Origin: Klebsormidium nitens
Taxonomy: Eukaryota; Plantae; Klebsormidiophyceae
Length of the DNA: 64,000 nt
NCBI GenBank assembly: GCA_000708835.1
Contig: DF237199.1
Coordinates: 58,207 to 122,206 of the forward strand
Reading direction: 5' to 3'
The position numbers and the translations under genes are program-made. Of the stretch, positions 15,331 to 31,600 are shown one piece after another. Below the pieces are notes generated by a model that did no database searches, was not told the DNA's origin, and saw nothing but the letters and a program-made list of their open reading frames with translations. Within the stretch, counting starts at the first letter, position 1, and every line of letters starts with the position of its first letter.

Positions 15331-18300
15331 TCACGGCACCAGGATGACGGAGCCCTTGTTGTGGCGGCCCTCGAGGTACGCGTGCGCCCCGGCCGCATCC
15401 GCGAGCGGGAACCGGGTGATCTCGGGGATGCGAACGCGGCCGCTGCCCAGCTCATTCAAGGCCGCCTGCAGGGGTAGGAAACTTTTGTTATTTAGGTGTC
15501 TTGAAGTCCATCGCATTTCATTAACCTTTGCTTACCAAAAAGGCCGTTCTTTGCAGAACGTGCCGCTTCTGCAGGACTCGGGCGCCCGCAGGGGCACCAG
15601 CTTTGAGAGCACGCAATGGACCGTTTGGTGGTGAACCAGCTACCGTCAGCTCCACAGATTTGGGACCTCAGACCTTCTTGAGTCAAACAATGAAGACACC
15701 CGAAGAAGAAAGTGGAGGCCAATAATGTAGATTGAGCAACAAAAAAGCTTGGCACTCTTTCGCGTCAACTTCCGCTCCGATAGAGCATGGAATGTCAACG
15801 AGAACGAAACCTCGAGTGAAACTGATTCAAAGACAAAATGGACACTGAACGGGGAACAGGCATCCGGCAAAGCTGCAGTTCGAGAGCTGCCCACCTGCGC
15901 GAACTCGACGTACTCCTCGCGTGTTTTGATGTAGTTGAAGAGGGCCGCCTGATGCACCGAAATGTGACGGCGGTTCAAGTACTCCTGCCGCAGGTCTTCC
16001 GGGTCGGGCGGGCCGGAAGCGGAACCGAAAAGAACCTGGGAAATGAGGTCGGAAGGTTCAGTAAAAATGGGGTTGGGGACGAAGAGCAAGCTTCTTTCTT
16101 GAGAGGGCTTTGCTTCCCCAGAGTCATGACTATTAGAGTTACAGGTCGAGGTTCATGCGCTCAAAGTTTATCGAGCGTGGAAGCGGTGGAGTTTTTCGCT
16201 TTCTGTGCCCCTGGCTCGTATGAAACTACTTTGTCTGGTAGACCTCGAATTATCTCGTCGATCTGTCGCCTCCAGGACCCATCAGAATCTTCAGAAGCTG
16301 AAGCAGACCTGCTCGAGTATGACCAAACAAAAAACTTAGCTCGTCAGGTTCGCGAGGACCGGAGATCTCCCCGGGCCGTCCTGATGCTTCGGTTCATCTA
16401 ATTATTGCTCACCAGGTGTCCGTTGTCGTGGAGGCTCTCGAGGGACGCCTTGACGGTGGCCTTGCCCACCGCGTCATACACGACGTCAGCCATGTGCCCC
16501 TTGGTCGCCTGCTTGACGCCCTCCGCGACGTCCTCGCGCGTGTACACGATCACGTGGTCGCAGCCGTTCTCGCGCGCGCGCGCGGCCTTCTCGTCGGATC
16601 CGACGGTCACGATGACGTGCGCGCCCAGGCGCTTGGCCCACTGGGTGAGCAGCGACCCGACGCCGCCCGCGGCCGCGTGGACCACGACCCCTGGACCACG
16701 ACCCACTGGCCCGCCTTCACCGGGTACCTGGACGGACAGCAGCGCCCTCAGAAACGGAGACAAAGTTTATTAGGGGACCTGAATTACCCAGACTGGTTCA
16801 AGGATGGAACTGCTTTGCTTGCCGCCACGTATATGGCTTTGTGCTTAGGTTGATAGCAAGCGGTCGAACAAAGTGAGCACTTTTTGATTGCCAACTCAGC
16901 TGGTATATTTGACAGAGCATTCGAGCAGACGCAACACCACCATAGTTCCCCTGACGCTGACGGAGCTACTCCGTTCCAACCCATTATGCTTCTTAAGCGG
17001 CGACCAGCAATGGAACACTTCCAGCGTCCTGATCAACTGAAGACCTACCTGTGATTGAGGGCGTTTGTAAGTCGAAACTCTTACAGTGGGTTCAGGACTG
17101 ATACGCAGTCGTGCCCTTCGACCACACTTTGCTCGGGCTTTGGTATTCAAGGCAGCTTAATTCTACCGTCGTATTTCCCTCCTGACCTTTGTCTCTACGG
17201 AAAGCATCCTGACCGACTGCATAATTCTGCTTCGAAGTAAATACCGAATCAAACCATTGATTCTGCGGTCGGCAAAACGAGGACCGTTNNNNNNNNNNNN
17301 NNNNNNNNNNNNNNNNNNNNNNNNNNNNNNNNNNNNNNNNNNNNNNNNNNNNNNNNNNNNNNNNNNNNNNNNNNNNNNNNNNNNNNNNNNNNNNNNNNNN
17401 NNNNNNNNNNNNNNNNNNNNNNNNNNNNNNNNNNNNNNNNNNNNNNNNNNNNNNNNNNNNNNNNNNNNNNNNNNNNNNNNNNNNNNNNNNNNNNNNNNNN
17501 NNNNNNNNNNNNNNNNNNNNNNNNNNNNNNNNNNNNNNNNNNNNNNNNNNNNNNNNNNNNNNNNNNNNNNNNNNNNNNNNNNNNNNNNNNNNNNNNNNNN
17601 NNNNNNNNNNNNNNNNNNNNNNNNNNNNNNNNNNNNNNNNNNNNNNNNNNNNNNNNNNNNNNNNNNNNNNNNNNNNNNNNNNNNNNNNNNNNNNNNNNNN
17701 NNNNNNNNNNNNNNNNNNNNNNNNNNNNNNNNNNNNNNNNNNNNNNNNNNNNNNNNNNNNNNNNNNNNNNNNNNNNNNNNNNNNNNNNNNNNNNNNNNNN
17801 NNNNNNNNNNNNNNNNNNNNNNNGAGGACCGTTCAAAGGACCTACCCTAAGTTGCGTCTTGGGACTCCGGGTCACTCACGCGTGATACAGCAGCATGTAG
17901 ACGGTCATCCCCTTGAGCAGCCCCGCGGCTGCCGTTTCGTCGTCCACGCCGTTGATCTCGGTGTTCGGGTAGAAGCGGCTCAGGTTGATGCACCGGTCGG
18001 TGCCCACGTTGCGCTCCTCCGAGTAGGCGCCCTGCTCGCGGGTCAGGTACGTGACGTGGTCGCCCACTTCGTAGTCCTCCTTGGACACGTCTGCGGAGGA
18101 ACGGAAAAGTTGGTTGACAGAAAGCGAGCCAAGCGCAAGCTGGCAGTAGAAGGAAAGGTTCAGACTTCCGATTGCAGCATTCTGAGTGGAAACATTAACG
18201 GACGAAATAGTCATTCGAATAAGTTCGTGCAGATTTCATGGTGCGCTACTTGATCTTCTCTGTCCCAACCTCGTGGCCATCTTATCAAGCCGTGGGCACG

Positions 18301-20974: not shown

Positions 20975-23414
20975 ATGGGTGTGGAAGTTCACCAAGCAAA
21001 TGGGGCGCACGCTGACGAGTCCCCCGCCAGCCCTCATGTGGAGACAAAGATCCGGTACCTGGTGCCTCAGAGCCACCAGCTCGTTGAGTACACATACCAA
21101 CCTGAAAACGGGGACCCGCAGACAAACGGCAAGTATGAGCTGAAGACAGTCAAGATTGGAGACCTGAAGGCGCTGGCGGCGTCAGAGGGCTTATCGGTGG
21201 ATAAGCAGGGCTTTACAATCCTCGAAAACAGGTGGGCGAGTCGTTCTGAAGAATGTACAGATTGGATGGGGCTCTGAGCCATAGCTTCAGGTTATGTGTA
21301 GCTGTGTCGGGAGATTCGTTTACGTATGTTTGTTGGCGCGCTGGTATATTTGCCACTCAGGCATCACAGCAAGCTTTTTCTTGCAACCACAGTAGTGGAC
21401 TCAGTCAGCTGGGAGCCAGAAGTTAAGTGAAGTCAGTGATCTGCAACCAGTTGGAAGATGGAAGATTCACGTTGAATATATGGGCTGCCACCACCCTGAT
21501 TGAATGTGCTGACACCGCACTTCATGAGCCTTACGGCTCAACTGCAAAGCCACCGATGGAGCTGCTGGGTATGTCTGGGTCTGTCCATGTCACTTTGCCT
21601 CTATCGCACCTGCTTCTGCCACTAACAACAACAAGTGTCTCTGGTTGCAGGACCCAGGTGAAGGACTGGGACAATGTGGAAGAGATTCAAAAGGTGTACT
21701 ATCCAGAGGCTATAGAGCTCGTGAAAGCGGCCACAGGGGCATCCAGAGTGTTCATCTTTGACCATACAATTCGGAAGCAACCAGAGCAGAAGGTCCCGGA
21801 CGGCGAAGCGTGAGCTTTCAAACCAAACGTCTTTCCCTTTCAACCATTGCAGAAGCCTGCTTAGTCTGCACTGTAAAGATGGTCCACAGGTACTCCGATC
21901 AGGCCAGTTCTATCAAGCTTGGTTAGTCTGCACTGATTGACATTGTCCACAGGTATGCGGATCAGGCCAGTTCTTCCAAAATTGGGTTTCTGTATTATTT
22001 AAAGTTGGCAAAGAAGCAGACCTTCTTTGTTTTGCTGGGTGGACTTCTTTAAGTGTGTTGACACCCTGGGGCTGCCTGTTCCTGCACTGTTCCAGCTCTA
22101 TATTTGGCAAGTCCTATTGCTACAGAGTTTTCATTCACAACGCCTGTCGATGTGTTTCTTAAACTTGATAGTCTTCCCATACGCAAGTGGTCGTGTCAAT
22201 TACACTCAGGCCATACTTTGTTTGGAACAGCGGGAACGTGAACCGGGATAAGGTAGGCAAGCGGGAGCCAGTGAGGAAGGCCCACGTGGACTACACGGTG
22301 ACTTCCGGACCCCAAAAGATCCAGCAACTCATGGGCGACGAGGCGGAGAAACTGCTGAAAGGGCGCTTCGCCGAGGTCAACGTATGGCAGCCGCTGCGGG
22401 TGAGGCCGACCTTTCAAATTGAACGACGTTCAGATCCAGCAAAAGGAAAGTCGGATGCATACTTACATGTTCAGTGGGGCAGCAGAGGGATTGCAGAGGC
22501 CTCAGGAAGCAGCATGTGGGAGCGATTTTGAGGCAGTGCTTTTCTGGCGCGTTGAGTTGAATTCGCTCAGCCTCTTTGCCCTGTAGTGCACTGCATTCAG
22601 TTCACCACCGGGCCGGGTGTCGGTTGTTATGTCCTCATACGTATGTACTCAGCGGCGGATGTGGCCTCGTCAGTCCAGCGAGGCAGCAAATTATCGCTTG
22701 TGCCTACCGTTCTGACTTCGTTCGCTTTTCTTCATTCTCAGGGCCCGGTCCAGGACACACCCCTTGCTGTTGCGGACGCCCGGAGTATTCCGAAAGAGGA
22801 CTTGGTCCCGACCAAGATTGCCTTCCCAGGACGGTGGGGGGAGGTTTACAGCCTGACTCACAAGTAAGCCACTGCGAGCCACTTGCTCGGGTCGAAGTAA
22901 AGGCGGGGCGCCCGGTTTTGAACGCTCGACGATCTCTTACTGAGGCGAATAGAGGGCACCACCACGTTCGAGACAGTGAGCTGAACGATTTGCTCGGGAA
23001 GATGTGAAAGTTTCATCGTAACCGATGGAGCTCGAAGGTTCGTGGATGAATTGTGAAGGTTTGTCAGAGGAGTCATGAAGAACTGTTAGCAAAGCGAGTT
23101 CAGCTTGTGACCACAGCTTGTGACCACGGCTTCCAGTTCTTTCTTTCCTCGATTTGATTTCTCTCATCGATTTGCGAACTGACGTTCGTTGAACTCACAT
23201 TTGCCGAACTGCTTCTGCCAGTCCCGCGCACCGGTGGTACTACATCCCAGAGCAGCGCGCGGAGGAGGCCCTGCTGTTCAAGTCGTACGACTCCGTCGAA
23301 GACGGGTCGGTAGCGCGGTTCACCGGCCACAGTGCTTTCGACCACCCGCACGCCCCTGCAGATGCGCTGCCGCGGCAAAGCATTGAGACGAGGACCTTGG
23401 TCTTCTGGGAGTAG
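20975..23414 (+). CDS. CmcJ/NvfI/AsaB-like oxidoreductase (Fe(II)/2-oxoglutarate-type; fungal GA4-desaturase-like family)
   Basis: Exons 20975-21231, 21651-21809, 22231-22399, 22742-22863 and 23222-23414 are phase-compatible. Family motifs LSVDKQGF, VYYPE...ATGASRVFIFDHTIR, AHVDYT, VNVWQPL, PLAVAD, HRWYY, LFKSYDS and HSAF...RQSIETR. Confidence 0.88.
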
Positions 23415-24686
23415 ACTTTTCTAGTGACGGCTTAGTTTTTCTTGGCAAGCCTGCAGAGGACATTCATATGCGCACGCTTGAGTTGTGCATGCACCTTGTG
23501 TACATAAAAGTTCGGACTATCATGGGGCATTCTAGCGCCCCTGTTACCAGCTCTCTTTGGTAACTATCAAAGTCCTGACAAAGTATTTCCGACTTAGTCA
23601 AAATCTACATATGCAAATTGTGTTTTGAAGAACGTTGACACTCAACGTCGAGTCCGACTCGACAATCTTGTGATGTCAGAGCTGTTGGCTTGAAAGCTTA
23701 CTGGTAATTCGCAAACCGTTTTCTTCTGCGCCGACGCGGCAGCGGCGTTCATAGAGTCCAAGGCGGATCCGACGGACATGACGGTTTTTGGTTGAAGTCA
23801 GCGGCTTTTTTTCTCATAAACATTACATTTGTGAGTGGACATCATTTCACCTATTGATCGCCTTGACTATGTTGTCACCACTGTTAAGTTTACAATCTTA
23901 CGACATGTAGACCGCGGGGGGCATTAGCTCGACGGCCCCGTAATGTCATATACTTACGTACTTCATATGAATTGTGCCATGACAACGAGTTCGAAGATCG
24001 CTTTTCGCGAGCTAGGCCGCTCAAACTCTCATGGACCGTTTGATTGCGCCGCTAATTAAGTCACACCGGCCTACGCCAAACGCGGTATCTACGTATACAC
24101 GCGCATCGAAGCGATCGCGACAGTGGCGCTCGCGTTCATATGCATCGCATGTGGAATGTCACCCAATTGCGGCAACTTGTATTTGTATGCAGCCGCCTAT
24201 AGTGCAAGCTGCTTCAATGCACAATGGGCGGCCCATGTATGATCCAGACCGACATTCTTTCTGCAGCTCTCTTAGTATTTGGATGATGCAAACGTCTGCT
24301 GAGGGCTTCTCGGACCCCATGTCCGTCGCGTGACCATATAGCTCTGCATACTTGAAGATCGACGGTTCAAAAGTCAGCGCACATGAAGGCCGGCCATATC
24401 TAGCTCTTGCGTGTTAACCATCTGTGCAACGGCATGCAGCTAATTGAAGCCTGGCAAGGCATGTCGCCCAGACGTTGCCAGCCAAGCGGTGGTAACACAC
24501 AAGAAAATATGCGCCTGCTGTGTGTATGTATCGGTGATTTTTTGTCCCGTTTGGCCAGTGTTTGTGCAAAGCACTGGAGATGCTCAAGAAGCAATCCTTT
24601 TACTAAGAGTCGCTTTAATCTAGACATTATAATGCAGGAAATGTTGCAATTTGAGCACCAAAATATTTCCCCAATGAAAAGAGGCT

Positions 24687-27600
24687 TTAAGTTCGTCTCG
24701 AACAAGCCCTGAAGAGTATACTTCGGGGCAACTTCGCTCCTCTTGAGCTCAGTCGGTCAAGCACTTCCTCTACTTGCACTTGCTCTCCCGTCACCTTCAG
24801 ATCAACGTAGGACTCTGCGCCTTTACTGATTCCATTCATCAACGGCGGAACGCACAGACTATCTGATTTCACAGCGTCGTGAAGTAGAAATTTGACTCGT
24901 TTAGCCACCGGCTGTGCAGCGTCGAGGATAGTTACACCTTCGGGAAGGACTTCTGCCAGGACGTCCTGCAGTTGCGAAAACGACCCCGTTTCAAGGATGA
25001 GAAATTGTCAGGGTGTGCTTTGCCAAACTAATGTGAGAGGAGAAGCTGTAGAGAGTAAAATTAGTGGAACCAGGGTCGAGCGGGAAGGGTGCCCAGTCTT
25101 AATGTGATATGCTTCGAAGTTGCTAATCCTGCGACTCAAATATTGTGGTAGGATGAGCCGACACGAGTTTTCGGCTAGCAAGGCTGATAGAGAGACCTCG
25201 AAGTCGAAGCTGGCGTGCTTACTCGCAGAAAAGCGTAGTGCGTGCACCCTAGGACTACCATATCTGCTCCTTCCGAGATCGGCCCGGCCAGTTGGGACCA
25301 CAGCATGCTCGTCACAACTGGCCCGCTAATCTGCACGGAAGCGCGATCCAGAAAAATCATGAGTAAAGTCCAATACGGCAAGCAGGGCAAGGCTTGTCTC
25401 GTTTAGATGAGCCTGCTTAATTTGCCTCAAAAGGTCCTACAAACCCCGAAAGGTTTATCCTTAAGATGGCACGCTCCACCAGTACCGTCCATGATCCTTG
25501 CAGACGATGGACCCGCAGATTGAATTGTTTTCCAAGTTTGGAGGATCTGAAGAGTTCCACAGTTGGAGAGGAACAGGAGAAATCGAAGCTGAGTTGATCA
25601 GAATCACCGCCTTTGCACAAACTTTCGACCACCGTGTCAACTTCTGTGAAGAAAAGAAATCTTTCAGCAGATTTCACTGCTTTCGATATATCAAGCCTTA
25701 AGCGCACCCTGAAGGAATTCTGCACCAACGTCCACCCTTTATCAGGGTGCTTCTTGCAATTGGACTCTGCCTGTATCACGGGCCTACCTGTCCTGCCTCC
25801 ACCATATCCGCCAGCCCTGGCATGGGCAGCACGGACACTCGGGCACTGTGCGCATGATTCCTGACCAACGCTGCCAGGCGGGGCCCCTCTGCCGTGTGCT
25901 GCGTCGCCAACACGACAATATGCTGCACATCGAGCACAGATGTCAGCAGAATCATTGGAAACCTGAGATCATGCCTGCTAACTAGTCGGTCTGTTTAGCG
26001 ACTGTTTGAGCCTGAGGCCCCTCAAGGTTCGTCTCAGCTGAGAGGGTATCCACTGTCAAAAAGAAGTCAACCTTGGAAGTTTGTGAAGAATCTTCAGGAA
26101 TGGTCAGCGTCTTGGCAGAAATTTCATGCGTCGACAGGAAACAATCTGTCCACCTTGAGTACGGTAGATTCCCATGATTAAGCCCCTCGTTGACTTTTGT
26201 TGGATAGGATCGTCTAGAAGATTCAGATAAAAAGTCTCAAACTAAACACATTTGATTGATATATCCTTTCCATACATGAATGAATTGTCACTTGTATGAC
26301 GCAATGGCATTGTCTGATCCAGCCCCCAACTCGGATTTGTACGGTCAATGTGCTCCTTTGACGCGCACCTTTGACTGGCTCATCTGGACCGCAGGCTTCA
26401 CAGCAGGTTCTACCCCAACACATGGTACCTGCACACTGCCCAGCGCATCTTCCTCAGCTGGTGAACACTGCCCTCACAGAGACAGTGATTCACAACAGCA
26501 GCACAAAGAAAGACTTGGCTAACTGGCCCTTCTGTCATGAAGGTCAGCTTATTAAGTTCTGTTTCATCTACAGCACAACCTGACTGGTTCAGACATGCAA
26601 GTTCCCTCCTTACGAGAAGAACAACTTCCACCAATATCCCCCAGTTGACCGCCACGAAACAGAGGAAAGTGCACTTCTCCGCATGCACAGGGCTTACCTC
26701 GCACGGACACACTCAAGGGCTGCTGATGACGCAGTGTTGCATGCCACAACCACCAGCTGGCATCCATCTGAAACTGCAGCCAGCGCGGATCATGGAGGTT
26801 ACGTCAAATGAAATGCACTTTTAACTCAGGCGGCTCTCAGCAATTTTCTGTATCCGTTTTAAACCTGTAGCTAGTTGTCTCAATGCGCTTCAGGCCTTCG
26901 AAAGGTCTTACATTAAGTGTAAGCAGGTAAACAGGGCAATCAACCGTCAATGTCAATCAAGCATTGCTCTCTGCTGTTGGTCTAATCTTGCTAGTTTCTT
27001 ATTTTCAGTCAGAACGAAATCATCGTTCGATTCCCTGGAAACTTGAATGTTGGCTCAACTGCCTGTGATGGAGCACTGCCTACTTACCGAGCGAGTGGCT
27101 CAAGTACAAAGCTCGTTGAACCAGAATCTCTTGGCTTTGCCCTCCGTAAGGGAAATACGCTGTGTCTGCGATGTAGTGGATCTTGACACCTGGCTGCAAG
27201 AAGCAGCATTAGGGTTAGGGTTCCGTTTTGCAATCAACTTTTTGGAGCAGGTTTTCACTCCATGACTGCCTGGAATCGTGGCATTGCTCTATTACCACCT
27301 TTGGTAATGAAATTCTGACGAAGGACTAAGACTTCTAGCTACTTCAAGAAGAGGGATCTGAGGGATCTGAGCTGAAGCACTTACCAGAACATCTTGCACC
27401 GCAGCTGCTACGCTTAGACCGCCAATCCCTGAATCCCAGATTCCGATCTTCATGCTCTGGAAATTGCCATGCGAGGTAATATTTGTGGATAAGCTGCAAC
27501 ACACTTTCTGAGAAAGCGTGTCTCTATTCCAGTATCCGGGACAGAGGTTAATTGATCTCTTCCGGTCCAGAGATCTTGCACCGTGGAAGCTGGGGAAATG

Positions 27601-28079
27601 TAATTTTACATTCCTCCAGAACAGAGGGCTCATCGACCCTTGGAGTACTAGGATACAGGGATCCGCCTGCAATCTTAGCGCGTGCTTCTGTGGTATCAGA
27701 CATGGCGGCATCGCGTCTCAGGATGGTGTTTCTCCGATATCCTCTCAATGATCAGATTGCCGCCACAATGCTGAGACCTCTGCAGGGCTGGCAATAGAAG
27801 ATTGACAAGATATGAGGTGGCGACCAGCATATGACAACGCCGGCAAGCTCCTGACCCGCTCGCTTGCTCTGACTGCAGTGTCACAATAGGCTCTTTGAAC
27901 CGTCAGCTGACGCATTGTGGCCATGACAACCTGCGATGGCTGGCTGAACCCAGGTCAGAGCAACGAGCCCGCATCTGCCTGCAACTTCTAGGAGGGGTCT
28001 TCTCTTCACTGTTGATCAGACGCCAGAGCTGATCGTCTGAAAAAATGCCGCTCACTTCCATCATGTCATTGTCAAACAT
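24687..28079 (-). CDS. murI: Glutamate racemase (MurI), spliced, with an N-terminal extension
   Basis: Core exons 27456-27385 (MKIGIWDSGIGGLSV), 27193-27088 (YIADTAYFPYG), 26773-26698 (VVVACNTAS), 26435-26369 (VGVEPAVKPA), 25922-25788 (IVVLATQHT), 25330-25223 (VVLGCTHY) and 24965-24687 (ILDAAQPVAKRV); all junctions in phase. Tentative upstream exons 28079-27931 and 27589-27505. Confidence 0.93.
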
Positions 28080-28604
28080 GTGGTGACTTGAAGTGATGTC
28101 TTCGCAAGCTAGGATCAGTTTGGATTTCAATTCCCGCGTCAATCTCCTCAGAGTGATTTTAATGGTGTGGCGTTCCGTACACCGGTGATCGAACCTTCCT
28201 GGGTGCCAAACAAGGTCAAAAATTCTGACGGTCGAAAATACGTCGCTTGTTCTGACGAAAACATTGGAATTCTACACAGAGGACGGGGTCAAATTACAAA
28301 CTGGTTGAAGTCACTTTCTTCCTCGTACAGAAGTCAGAGAGGACGTCAAAGGTGCGTCAAAGGCGCTGCTGTCACTGCTGGTGTTGGCGGTGCTGCATTT
28401 ACAGGTTGAGCAATGAAAGGGTGTGGCATCTGGTCGCGTGCTGCAGCTCGTAACTGGTAGTCTTACCTTGAGAGTCCCATGGCATCATGAAAAGGCGCGG
28501 GGGCGGAATTGTACGCACAATGCGAGCACGACAAGATATTTGATCTAGACTGCCAAGAATACATTGGGGCATCACTCAGTACTTTTACACGGTTGCTGTT
28601 AGGC

Positions 28605-31600
28605 ATGGAGGTCAGTCAGGGCACCCGTGATCAGCACGAAGGGGAGAGCCGGTTCATTCACCTGTTGCAGCCCATCCGGGACCTGGCCGGCAACTGGAAC
28701 ATAGACATTGCGGCTGAGCTTTCGGACTACTTGGAGGAGTTGGAGTCAATTACCTTCTCCTTCGATGGAGGCCACAGTACCCTGAACTTTGCAGAGGGTA
28801 AGCAGGCTGGCTGGTAGCCAGTGTCGTGACTGATCTTCGGTTTAACCCTACTTACATGGACAGAGGATGTTGCCTCAAATTGATTGTGTGCTGCACTCCA
28901 ATGCTTTGTTGAGTGAGGACCAATGTGCATACAATTTTGAAGGTTCCTGCCATGTTTTACCCTTGGTAGACTAGCTGTAGTTGGTGCTGGTGCCGGTTCT
29001 CTGATCCCATTGCTTCGGTTGTAAAAAGTTAGAACTACAATTGCCAGGCTTCAGGAAAGCCCCCCCATCATCTGACAGACTTCAATTGCATCTTCAGCGG
29101 CCCTGGTAATCCAAGGCTCAGCATGCATCTACAGCAAGAAGGTGGAGTCCCTCTATGGTCTGGTCTACCAAGCCCTGGACGTCATTGCAAAGAAGAAGTG
29201 AGTTGCCCAACTCATGGAAATGCAAGATTACAAAGGTGGCATACTTGACGGTTGCCCCCTGTTTTGCTGGTATGTGATTGGCTGCTTCAGGAAGAACTAA
29301 TTTGACTAAGGCTTACCCCATCCTCGCTTGCTGAGCCCCTAGCATTTCTGTGCACACTGCATTGCTTGAGTGGCTTCTAATTGAGTTAGGTTTGAAGTAA
29401 CTAGGAGGATATCGAGTTATCAAGGGATAACTGATCATGCAAATACTCGAGTACTTTTGAAGTGGTTTACCGCCTGTGCAGGCGAGCAGAGGAAGCGGGG
29501 GCTGACTTGGAAGCCAGCGGAAATGCGATCCAGGATGAAGAGGAGGAAGAGGAGGCGCGCTTCTTGCTGCTGGATGACATCCCAGGTACAGTCTTATGTT
29601 TCATCATCAACAGAAGCCTTCTGACCTACCTATACTTCCTTCAGAAACGCCTGCAGCATTTCAATTCTTGCATGCTACGCTCATTTGCAAACTTGGTCAA
29701 AGTGGCGGGGTCGACGGAGCGGTCACTCCTTACCTTCAACATCTCTTGGGTCGGACATGCCCTTGCTGATTTGCTGAGAAGCATGTTTCTATGCAGAGGG
29801 CACGGGCATTGACCTGGATGAGGTGGCGGATGAGGAGAACCCAATTTTCACCGCAGCGACAAGGGGGCCTCCCGCAGCATTGCTGGCTATGGAGGATGAG
29901 CGAATGGGGCCAGGGGGGCCAGGCAACATGGGGGGCGAAGCGGCCGCATACAAGGTGACTTAGGTTCTATTTTGATCTGTCTGATCAGCTGGTTGTCGAG
30001 AGCTTATCAATGAGCATGCGCTGTGGAGAAATTTTGTTGCTCGTGGTGGTCATGAATGAACAATGGTGGGTTAAGAGGATTACTTCTTGCCTTTCTTCTC
30101 TTCATTGGGAATGAGGGTGCTCTGCACTTTATGCGAAAGGAGACTGGACATCCCACTGGCCATCGAAGAATCAGCCTGCCACAACGTTCCCAACCTTCAC
30201 CAGAGCCCAGGTCTAGGAATTCCCGATTGACCTTTCAGTCGCAAGTGATCACACCTTCATTCTTACACCGGAAAAACTTCTCAAGGCCGGGGTGGCTCAT
30301 GGTCTCCCTTGAAGAACCTTCAGGGAGAAGCCTTTCTGGATTGGAGTGTCAAGTGTCAACGCCTTGCTTTGATAGATTCTTCCATATCTAGTCAAACGTC
30401 GCTTTTCTCTCTGAGATAAACTTGTACTTGAAATGACGCCCACCCCGGTCAATCCTGTTTGACGATTGCAGATCAACAGCTGTACCGTGCACTCTTCGGG
30501 GGCTCTGCTGCTCGACCCCCGGGATGGTGACTTGCTGGATGACCAGCTGATGCCTATCAGTTTCCGAGCGTCACCACCAAGCTTGCATCCAGAGGGTTGG
30601 AGTCCTGCCAAAACGGCACCCCAGAATGGCGGCGTGGATGAGGGTGGGTCAGGTTGAGATTCAAACAACTGTGACAAACTGTTGCAACCAAAGGGTCTTC
30701 ACAGATGTATTCTCACAGGTGGCAACCCGTGAACGAGAAACAATAGCTAGGCGGGCATGTTGAATGGTTTGCTTTGAAAAGCTCCCAGACCCAAGAGTTT
30801 TGCAGAGGAAGGATTATCGTTTCTCTAAATCACCACAAGGAGACCCGGTTTGCATCTTTAGACTGTACAAAGCTGACCAGAGAACGCGAATTTTTGTCCC
30901 CCGCTGCAGGCCCCCGCCTTCAAAGAGAACTCCCCCTTGTCAATATCAACTGCTCCAGACTCTCTTGACTTTCCTCTCATTGCAGCCACTGATCACATGG
31001 ATGACGATGACAACGACTTTGGGGGCGGCGGCGACAACTGGGACGGTCCAACAGGGGATCCCCCAGGACAGGAGGAGGCGGCCCTAGGCGTTGCGGACCC
31101 AGCCCCAGGCCAAGCTGGTGCTGTTGACCCTGGTATGCAGACCAGGGGGGCCATGCAGCACGGAGCACCTGTTCAAGCTGAGCAGCAGGAAGAAGAGATC
31201 AACCCGTGGAAGCAGCTAGACCCCCATGATCCAGGGACGGCGGTCGTCCGGCCGTACAAGAGAGGTGGGTGGTTTGCGATCCACTTAGAAGGTTCCACAA
31301 GGCAAGCGAAGTCGGCTCATATTTGACTGCTTTGAAGGCTTGGTGCGGAATGGTCGTTCACCTTGAAAGGGCTGCTTTTGTGTGGTTCTGGTAAATGAGT
31401 TGGTAGGTTTTAAGCAAAGGCAGTCTTTTTCACAAATTCCCCGAACCGATCCCGTCAGGGTGTCCATGATGTTGATGACCTGATTAAGCCCGTTCCAGAA
31501 TCAATCTAAGTCGGAAAGTGCACGAACTGCTGGTCACAACGTCTCAGGTTTAAGGCTCTTTCTCACCGAAGACTCTCTCTGCCAGGCCGCCCGGTCCGCC

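Follow-up and report, generated by a model that had tools for sequence, protein, structure and literature searches.

The glutamate racemase MurI makes the D-glutamate used in peptidoglycan, and the source of D-glutamate for the peptidoglycan of plant plastids is still unsettled. A murI gene (KFL_002500140) in the nuclear genome of Klebsormidium nitens, located in the window analysed here (64,000 nucleotides of contig DF237199.1), sharpens this question: where did the gene come from, and does its product supply the plastid wall? Most green plants have no obvious MurI (PMC9434261), which concurs with the premise of an earlier sequence-only reading of this DNA that land plants generally lack the enzyme. 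For moss, Dowson et al. (2022, Plant Physiol 190:165) suggested D-amino-acid transaminase or a moonlighting DapF as the source of D-glutamate, and they named GAQ85716.1 as one of two MurI exceptions in the green lineage and glaucophytes (PMC9434261). The protein encoded in the window is 100% identical to this K. nitens entry (KFL_002500140, UniProt A0A1Y1IAK3, 279 aa), which is labelled 'hypothetical protein' in GenBank and 'glutamate racemase' in UniProt/UniRef. Thus, the existence of Klebsormidium MurI is already known and the novelty implied by the sequence-only reading falls away. Where the gene came from and at which codon translation truly starts had not been established before, and our literature search found no study of the phylogeny, expression or targeting of GAQ85716.1.

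The account that we favour, and consider reasonably probable, joins a spliced MurI gene, a presequence starting at position 27711, a transfer from a Chloroflexota-like bacterium and a supply of D-glutamate in the plastid. A bolder version is put forward tentatively: the common streptophyte ancestor might have possessed MurI gained from a Dehalococcoidia-like Chloroflexota bacterium and not from the plastid ancestor, with a presequence missed so far, as the original D-glutamate supplier of the green plastid wall. If this were true, the point at which another D-glutamate route took over could be read from the loss of MurI on the branch towards Zygnematophyceae and land plants, and the D-glutamate source of plant plastids would become a dated gene-replacement question.

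Enzyme identity and proposed D-glutamate supply

The Klebsormidium protein reaches 182.4 bits against the NCBIfam equivalog TIGR00067 (cut-off 146.65), which the proteins from Mesostigma (172.3 bits) and Chlorokybus (171.6 bits) also pass, and it has no match to TIGR00035 (asp_race) at 1e-5. E. coli MurI (2JFN) is matched at E=3e-34. An AF2 model (pLDDT 93.8, pTM 0.91) displays the alpha/beta fold of MurI with its two domains, which differs from that of aspartate and hydantoin racemases. When this model was compared with the PDB by Foldseek, ranks 1-48 were all glutamate racemases (TM 0.66-0.86, E down to 3e-21), and aspartate and hydantoin racemases appeared only from E ~1e-8 to 3e-8. Profile, 2JFN match and structural ranking, based on sequence and predicted structure, argue for a glutamate and not an aspartate racemase. 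The TIGR00067 match ends at residue 218, and residues ~220-279 diverge from the profile. Taken singly, every exon peptide matched TIGR00067, in weak individual matches colinear with the profile; Pfam searches with single exon peptides yielded no match above threshold, such peptides being too short for it, and the exon 5 peptide had no match in the PDB.

Both catalytic cysteines, Cys70 (ACNTA) and Cys180 (GCTH), are present as first noticed from the motifs, and they are invariant in alignments of 10 and 45 sequences. Further invariant columns of the 45-sequence alignment are D7, S8, P38, Y39, G40, N71, T72, T113, T116, E148, T181 and H182, whose roles we take to be those assigned from solved MurI structures. 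Identity to bacterial MurI/RacE (E. coli 2JFN, M. tuberculosis 5HJ7, B. subtilis 1ZUW) is 22-32%. Sequence and model agree with these enzymes in both catalytic cysteines, in every residue that contacts the substrate and in the fold with two domains, whereas the Klebsormidium gene is nuclear, has seven exons and probably encodes a presequence. Judged by its sequence, the protein is a cofactor-independent MurI-family glutamate racemase with a complete two-cysteine active site. In line with the chemistry of the family, Cys70 and Cys180 would serve as a pair of opposed bases that take the alpha-proton off glutamate and give it back, assisted by Asp7/Ser8, Asn71/Thr72, Thr113/Thr116, Glu148 and Thr181/His182. 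The outcome would be an interconversion of L-glutamate and D-glutamate.

A complete peptidoglycan gene set has been described in Klebsormidium (PMC8227023), and the reference list of PMC9434261 includes a 2018 paper on plastid peptidoglycan labelling in K. nitens. Klebsormidium MurI would act in the plastid, giving D-glutamate to MurD for plastid peptidoglycan. A true glutamate racemase might instead serve salvage in the cytosol or mitochondrion, turning D-glutamate into usable L-glutamate; this D-glutamate would be released from bacterial walls that the soil alga digests, or when the peptidoglycan of its own plastids is turned over. The glutamate racemase reaction is freely reversible and the presequence described below is not clearly plastid-like, both of which would suit such a role. 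We nevertheless regard salvage as unlikely, as the complete Mur pathway of K. nitens requires a source of D-glutamate (PMC8227023, PMC9434261), and as MurI is kept in exactly the early streptophytes and reported absent where another route has been proposed (PMC9434261). Salvage and synthesis are compatible with each other.

Relatives and origin of the algal racemases

Orthologues were identified in Mesostigma viride (Mv07897) and Chlorokybus atmophyticus (Chrsp59S06971), both as EukProt gene models, and at a locus of a Klebsormidium relative (L082). The former two are 44-47% identical to Klebsormidium MurI and group with the Klebsormidium pair; the Mesostigma protein differs from Klebsormidium MurI in its short N-terminus and long C-terminal tail. 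No paper on glutamate racemase together with Mesostigma or Chlorokybus was found in our literature search. As MurI is common to the three earliest-branching streptophyte algal lineages, it is probably ancestral and was lost later.

The full-length protein used for searches was obtained via an exon 7 match in the representative library. No relative came up when genome_contigs and metagenome_contigs were scanned with exon 7, and a MAFFT alignment of the exon peptides on an E. coli MurI scaffold, which misplaced exons 5 and 7, was abandoned. Among the best 120 matches, the closest relatives are racemases from Dehalococcoidia/Chloroflexota MAGs (e.g. MSP21570.1, listed as P0006, and loci L002 and L003), with 48-51% identity over ~95% of the length. 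In the tree, the algal sequences, four in number, group together with moderate support (85/78) and are nested in a 51-row clade (support 100/100, stem 0.83) whose named members are all Dehalococcoidia/Chloroflexota MAGs and whose sister is an additional Dehalococcoidia sequence (100/95), the nearest relatives owing their taxonomic labels to metagenome bins. Besides this clade, Dehalococcoidia-type racemases have a C-terminal VTGD...RLRAAGA.LP signature in common with Klebsormidium MurI, carried by exon 7 in the form VTG-D/E...L.RL...GA.LP. Unlike Klebsormidium murI, their genes are bacterial and intronless, stand in compact neighbourhoods and are without a presequence. Some long relatives were considered as further eukaryotes and rejected: P0120 and P0117 both sit in compact bacterial gene neighbourhoods, and P0033 nests among bacterial sequences.

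Descent of murI from the cyanobacterial plastid ancestor, by endosymbiotic gene transfer, would mean that the affinity to Chloroflexota is spurious and stems from sampling or from subsequent transfers between bacteria. The cyanobacterial sample of the tree, which consists of picocyanobacteria only, gives this origin some room; a Vulcanococcus query for a wider range of cyanobacterial MurI had only picocyanobacteria among its matches, and the plasmid collection contained no cyanobacterial MurI. Moreover, picocyanobacterial MurI shares an unresolved region of the tree with several Anaerolineae (Chloroflexota) lineages, so that the overall distance between the MurI of Chloroflexota and that of cyanobacteria is not large. 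We consider the endosymbiotic origin distinctly improbable all the same. The algal proteins do not branch with the sampled picocyanobacteria but within the long-stemmed Dehalococcoidia-type clade with its C-terminal signature, and cyanobacterial names are absent from the best 120 matches of the Klebsormidium query and from those of the Mesostigma query. A union of algae and picocyanobacteria was rejected by the AU test (delta lnL 133, p=0.0003), the cyanobacterial group having been chosen after the first tree had been viewed. Finally, most plant peptidoglycan enzymes are reported to be non-cyanobacterial (PMC8227023), and a Chloroflexota-like MurI type agrees with this mosaic origin of the rest of the pathway.

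By sequence comparison, the nearest kin of algal MurI are thus Dehalococcoidia-type (Chloroflexota) and not picocyanobacterial racemases, so that the phylogenetic check proposed in the sequence-only reading, made with picocyanobacteria as the cyanobacterial sample, favours another bacterial source. That reading had left the choice between an ancestral and a laterally acquired gene, and both descriptions apply, the gene being present in early streptophytes and of a Dehalococcoidia-like, non-cyanobacterial type. We propose that a Chloroflexota-like bacterium was the donor of murI to an early streptophyte and that the gene would have been lost before the lineage of Zygnematophyceae and land plants. 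Cyanophora paradoxa, the other archaeplastid reported to have MurI beside plastid peptidoglycan, has two murI homologues (Price et al. 2019, PMC6704402). Cyanophora MurI is missing from the best 120 matches of the Klebsormidium and Mesostigma queries, and Cyanophora and streptophyte MurI are therefore probably of separate origin.

Gene structure, transcripts and start codon

Exon assembly from the region 24300-28500 yielded seven coding exons, running from 27453 to 24687 on the minus strand (Table 1). All six introns are bounded by GT..AG, and the 840-nt CDS encodes 279 aa with DSGIGG, FPYG, ACNTAS and GCTHY. The six exon joints are identical in transcript assemblies from four studies, with zero sequence differences, and the longest contigs from these studies (1522-1597 nt) extend from 24548, 24613 or 24622 to 28061-28079 across all six joints. 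These contigs show that the nuclear murI gene of K. nitens is expressed and that its seven exons are joined by splicing, which bears out the expectation that all MurI motifs are spread over at least seven canonical exons. The range first assigned to the gene, 24687-28079, reaches from the stop codon to the 5′ end of the transcript.

Table 1. Positions of murI features and of the adjacent gene within the window.
Feature	Position	Strand	Evidence
murI transcribed region	24548..28079	-	longest transcript contigs
murI 5′ leader (368 nt if start = 27711)	27712..28079	-	transcript contigs, ORF reading
proposed N-terminal presequence (86 codons, MPPCL start)	27454..27711	-	open frame and L082
core exon 1 (MKIGIWDSGIGG...; Asp7/Ser8 motif)	27385..27453	-	assembly, profile, RNA
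exon 2 (YIADTAYFPYGG motif)	27088..27193	-	assembly, profile, RNA
exon 3 (VVACNTASS; catalytic Cys70 codon 26739-26741)	26698..26773	-	assembly, profile, alignments, RNA
exon 4 (VGVEPAVKPA)	26369..26435	-	assembly, RNA
exon 5 (Thr113, Thr116, Glu148)	25788..25922	-	assembly, profile, alignment, RNA
exon 6 (VVLGCTHY; catalytic Cys180 codon 25244-25246, then Thr181, His182)	25223..25330	-	assembly, profile, alignment, RNA
exon 7, coding part (C-terminal segment; stop TAA 24687-24689)	24687..24965	-	assembly, RNA
murI 3′ UTR	24548..24686	-	transcript contig ends
head-to-head neighbour, 5′ part of condensin-II H2 (CNDH2_N) gene	28345..28845	+	RNA contigs 28345-28500, tblastx

The public model places the start codon at 27451-27453. 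Two leaders further upstream had been considered, and neither is borne out by the transcripts. Exon 1 is unbroken from 27385 to ~28079 in all four assemblies; thus the splice that would join ATG 27974 to SFHGARS and create a Ser/Arg-rich leader does not exist, its joint being absent from every assembly. ATG 28079, proposed as the start of an acidic leader, opens a 58-codon upstream ORF in a different frame. A 59-codon in-frame ORF from ATG 27924 (MATMRQ..., transit-peptide-like) was rejected as the true N-terminus, as two TGA codons lie between it and the main frame, the transcripts match the genome at this point and L082 has no counterpart. From ATG 27711 (MPPCL...), by comparison, the frame is open through into the core. 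In L082, the core begins IKVGIW, with Ile and no Met, and the in-frame ORF starts 87 codons upstream of it, also with MPPCL. Given this conserved start and a core without Met in L082, the public 279-aa model, which starts at ATG 27453, probably lacks an 86-aa presequence, and ATG 27711 would give a 365-aa precursor. The N-terminal extension is ~88 aa in the Chlorokybus protein and only 17 aa in the Mesostigma model.

The presequence is basic (10 R+K vs 3 D+E) and poorly conserved. The predicted precursor would look like a protein made for import into an organelle. Since the presequence is Ala-poor and only moderately Ser/Thr-rich, its destination may be plastid, mitochondrion or cytosol. GFP fusions or localisation predictions on the database sequence would miss this segment.

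Eight upstream ATGs precede 27711 (8-13, depending on the chosen start), a number not below chance (~5.7 expected), and one of them opens an ORF overlapping ATG 27711. The main frame of the long transcript may thus be poorly translated. In run X1, a second exon 4 acceptor at 26428, 7 nt inside the exon, produced a frameshifted isoform with a contig depth near that of the productive one in this single run; causing a frameshift, it was rejected as the true site, the correct acceptor being 26435. Together with the in-frame upstream ORF cut by two TGA codons, these features might suggest a decaying relic that is transcribed and yields little or no protein. This we hold to be very improbable, slightly more so than the endosymbiotic origin, as the productive isoform is the sole isoform in three of the four runs and L082 is a syntenic locus with seven exons, the same positions of all six introns and the same neighbours. 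Despite a divergence of ~29% at the protein level, all catalytic residues and the upstream start codon are conserved, and dN/dS between K. nitens murI and this orthologue is 0.12-0.18. The gene is under purifying selection.

That the algal scaffold contains contaminating or wrongly assembled bacterial DNA, as the bacterial nature of the nearest relatives might suggest, has a negligible probability, as six spliceosomal introns are all removed in RNA, eukaryotic flanking genes stand in the same order in the second species and bacterial relatives among the best 120 matches are at most 51% identical, so that the initial view of an integrated, spliced and expressed eukaryotic gene stands. One of the flanking genes is the CNDH2_N neighbour, of which 28573-28845 matches the corresponding gene of L082 by tblastx; at most ~265 bp separate it from the murI 5′ end.

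Exon structure, transcripts and genomic context

The murI gene of Klebsormidium nitens had been read from the sequence alone as an intron-containing glutamate racemase gene with all family motifs, and this description proved correct. Its seven exons are separated by introns of 191-457 nt, six of six with GT..AG borders, and form a reading frame of 840 nt encoding 279 residues with the motifs DSGIGG, FPYG, ACNTAS and GCTHY. The exon peptides match the glutamate racemase profile TIGR00067 colinearly at profile positions 1-19, 24-52, 63-81, 107-150 and 163-186. For exon 4, an acceptor at 26428 was rejected for the main model as it runs into stop codons, which the acceptor at 26435, lying 7 nt farther upstream, does not.

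Exons of murI, from open segments read within 24300-28500 of the window
Feature	Position	Strand
Exon 1 (core)	27453-27385	minus
Exon 2	27193-27088	minus
Exon 3	26773-26698	minus
Exon 4	26435-26369	minus
Exon 5	25922-25788	minus
Exon 6	25330-25223	minus
Exon 7	24965-24687	minus

The gene is real, already in databases and flagged in the literature. In a library of 1.84 billion representatives, exon 7 retrieved a protein of 279 aa to which it is identical at residues 188-279, and this protein turned out to be fully identical to the spliced model: GAQ85716.1, hypothetical protein KFL_002500140 of K. nitens (UniRef A0A1Y1IAK3, 'glutamate racemase'). The only mention of this accession that we found in the literature is in Dowson et al. 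2022 (PMC9434261). According to these authors, an obvious MurI homologue is missing from most green plants, Cyanophora paradoxa and K. nitens being the exceptions, and D-amino-acid transaminase or DapF was proposed for moss. Our analysis adds that transcripts prove the gene model, that the two proposed leaders are to be rejected and that the start codon probably needs correcting; it also adds orthologues from Mesostigma, from Chlorokybus and from a relative of Klebsormidium, as well as an affinity to Dehalococcoidia rather than to picocyanobacteria.

At least 20 public runs from seven studies match the stretch, and their contig sets resemble transcriptomes. When RNA contigs of four studies were aligned to the murI stretch, single spliced contigs of 1522-1597 nt from these studies contained exactly the six joints of the model with zero base differences. 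In one RNA run (X1), an alternative 3′ splice site (CAG/GTACC at 26428, minus strand, 7 nt inside exon 4) is used in a contig whose depth is similar to that of the normal joint. The resulting frameshift leads to a stop within 7 codons, so that this isoform is non-productive.

A related alga is represented by a 9.1-kb contig (L082, run SRR14092360), which encodes a database fragment of 107 aa with 56% identity to exon 7. The murI gene on L082 has the same seven exons, about 71% protein identity to that of K. nitens and the same neighbours, namely, upstream, a condensin gene (CNDH2_N) in head-to-head orientation and, downstream, conserved genes matching additional conserved exons at 20984-23415 of the window. 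Over 271 codons, dN/dS between the two genes is 0.12 (NG86) to 0.18 (YN00). Shared exons and neighbours together with this ratio indicate purifying selection and rule out contamination. Thus, with introns spliced in RNA, the earlier view of an integrated eukaryotic rather than a contaminating bacterial gene holds. In K. nitens, the condensin-II H2 gene (5′ part at 28345-28845, plus strand) is separated from the 5′ end of murI by at most about 265 bp, and the arrangement suggests a common bidirectional promoter. RNA contigs at 28345-28500, separate from the murI contigs, represent this neighbouring gene. Intron 1 contains a 12-nt telomere-like CCCTAACCCTAA (27209-27220, minus strand), probably by chance. 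A scaffold gap (run of N) extends over about 17280-17830, and ORFs listed over it are artefacts.

Translation start and 5′ leader

Translation of murI most likely starts at ATG 27711, in which case the 279-aa public model lacks the presequence. The L082 core begins with IKVGIW, without Met, and upstream of it 87 codons without a stop lead back to an ATG encoding MPPCL; the K. nitens frame is open for 86 codons upstream of the core to ATG 27711, likewise encoding MPPCL in otherwise unalignable DNA. The N-terminal extension is weakly conserved between the two algae and basic in both (10 R+K versus 3 D+E in K. nitens, 18 versus 7 in L082), and a similar extension, about 88 residues long and rich in Ser, Arg and Ala, is present in Chlorokybus MurI. 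Counting against efficient initiation at 27711, eight ATGs precede it, one of them opening an overlapping ORF. The 368-nt leader (27712-28079, minus strand) with these ATGs shows no ATG depletion; its uORFs comprise 58, 59 and 44 codons, the last overlapping the proposed start, and the matching 370 nt of L082 also contain 8 ATGs. The uORFs suggest that translation of murI is limited.

Two leaders put forward in the sequence-only reading were not upheld. A Ser/Arg-rich leader from ATG 27974 could be joined to the SFHGARS frame only by a splice from about 27930, which is absent from the RNA of four studies. Exon 1 is unbroken from 27385 to 28061-28079 in the contigs of all four; thus the 5′ region has no intron. 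The ATG at 28079, proposed for an acidic leader, is located at the extreme 5′ terminus of the transcript, and the ORF of 58 codons that it opens is in a different frame. A Ser/Ala/Arg-rich, transit-peptide-like ORF of 59 codons (MATMRQ..., 27748-27924, minus strand) is in the murI frame. As an N-terminus starting at 27924 it was rejected, since two TGA codons (27745-27747 and 27721-27723) part it from the main frame and no counterpart was found in L082; it is probably a chance occurrence.

Predicted activity and proposed role in the plastid

MurI enzymes need no cofactor: two cysteines on opposite faces of the substrate convert L-Glu into D-Glu and back, and the two cysteines of the algal protein would act likewise. 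K. nitens MurI scores 182.4 bits against the TIGR00067 equivalog cut-off of 146.65 and matches E. coli MurI (2JFN) at 3e-34. A structural model from a 45-row alignment (pLDDT 93.8, pTM 0.91) retrieved solved glutamate racemases at all Foldseek ranks from 1 to 48, followed by aspartate and hydantoin racemases at E about 1e-8. Invariant columns of this alignment include Asp7, Ser8, Pro38-Tyr39-Gly40, Cys70, Asn71, Thr72, Thr113, Thr116, Glu148, Cys180, Thr181 and His182. Score, 2JFN match, fold ranking and invariant active-site residues make an aspartate racemase unlikely, and the predicted activity is that of a glutamate racemase, as originally assumed.

Judging by the title of a 2018 paper cited in PMC9434261, plastid peptidoglycan has reportedly been visualised in K. 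nitens. A complete peptidoglycan gene set was reported for this alga as well (PMC8227023). In view of both, the most economical role of MurI would be to enter the plastid by means of the presequence and to provide MurD there with D-Glu. The main rival is a salvage function, with D-Glu coming from the walls of bacteria or from wall turnover.

Phylogenetic affinity

In a phmmer search of 5.8 billion proteins, the nearest relatives of K. nitens MurI were 44-51% identical. Among the best 120 matches, the named bacteria were without exception Dehalococcoidia or Chloroflexota MAGs, and the only named eukaryotes were Mesostigma viride (Mv07897) and Chlorokybus atmophyticus (Chrsp59S06971). The best 120 matches of the Mesostigma query gave the same bacterial picture and no further eukaryotes. 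Two long database relatives once considered as such (P0120 and P0117) were dismissed, both being surrounded by compact bacterial gene rows. Among species-representative bacterial genomes, two Dehalococcoidia reached 48-49% identity and the rest at most 45%, including one picocyanobacterium, Vulcanococcus. Vulcanococcus MurI matched only MurI of Vulcanococcus, Cyanobium and Synechococcus and is thus genuinely cyanobacterial.

In a maximum likelihood tree of 120 rows (LG+C20 PMSF), with approximate supports as the ultrafast bootstrap fell short of full convergence, K. nitens and L082 form a pair (100/100) that joins Mesostigma and Chlorokybus (85/78). These algae are nested in a clade of 51 rows (100/100, with a long stem of 0.83) whose labelled members are all Dehalococcoidia/Chloroflexota, labels that derive from metagenome bins; its sister is another Dehalococcoidia sequence (100/95). 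Picocyanobacterial MurI forms a separate 100/100 clade elsewhere. Constraining algae and picocyanobacteria together, a group chosen after sight of a quick tree, was 133 log-likelihood units worse (p-AU 0.0003). Of the two origins left open by the sequence-only reading, cyanobacterial or other bacterial, tree and AU test thus favour the latter, with a Dehalococcoidia-like rather than picocyanobacterial affinity; cyanobacteria were represented by picocyanobacteria only, and the algae by these four sequences. The algal proteins share a C-terminal signature, VTGD...RLRAAGA.LP, with those of Dehalococcoidia type; E. coli MurI lacks it. This affinity agrees with the view that plant peptidoglycan enzymes are mostly of non-cyanobacterial origin (PMC8227023).

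The MurI phylogeny cuts across phyla. Picocyanobacterial MurI (Vulcanococcus, Cyanobium and Synechococcus) shares an unresolved region of the tree with several lineages of Anaerolineae (Chloroflexota). The quick tree placed it closest to MurI of Anaerolineae type, not to any clearly separate cyanobacterial lineage.
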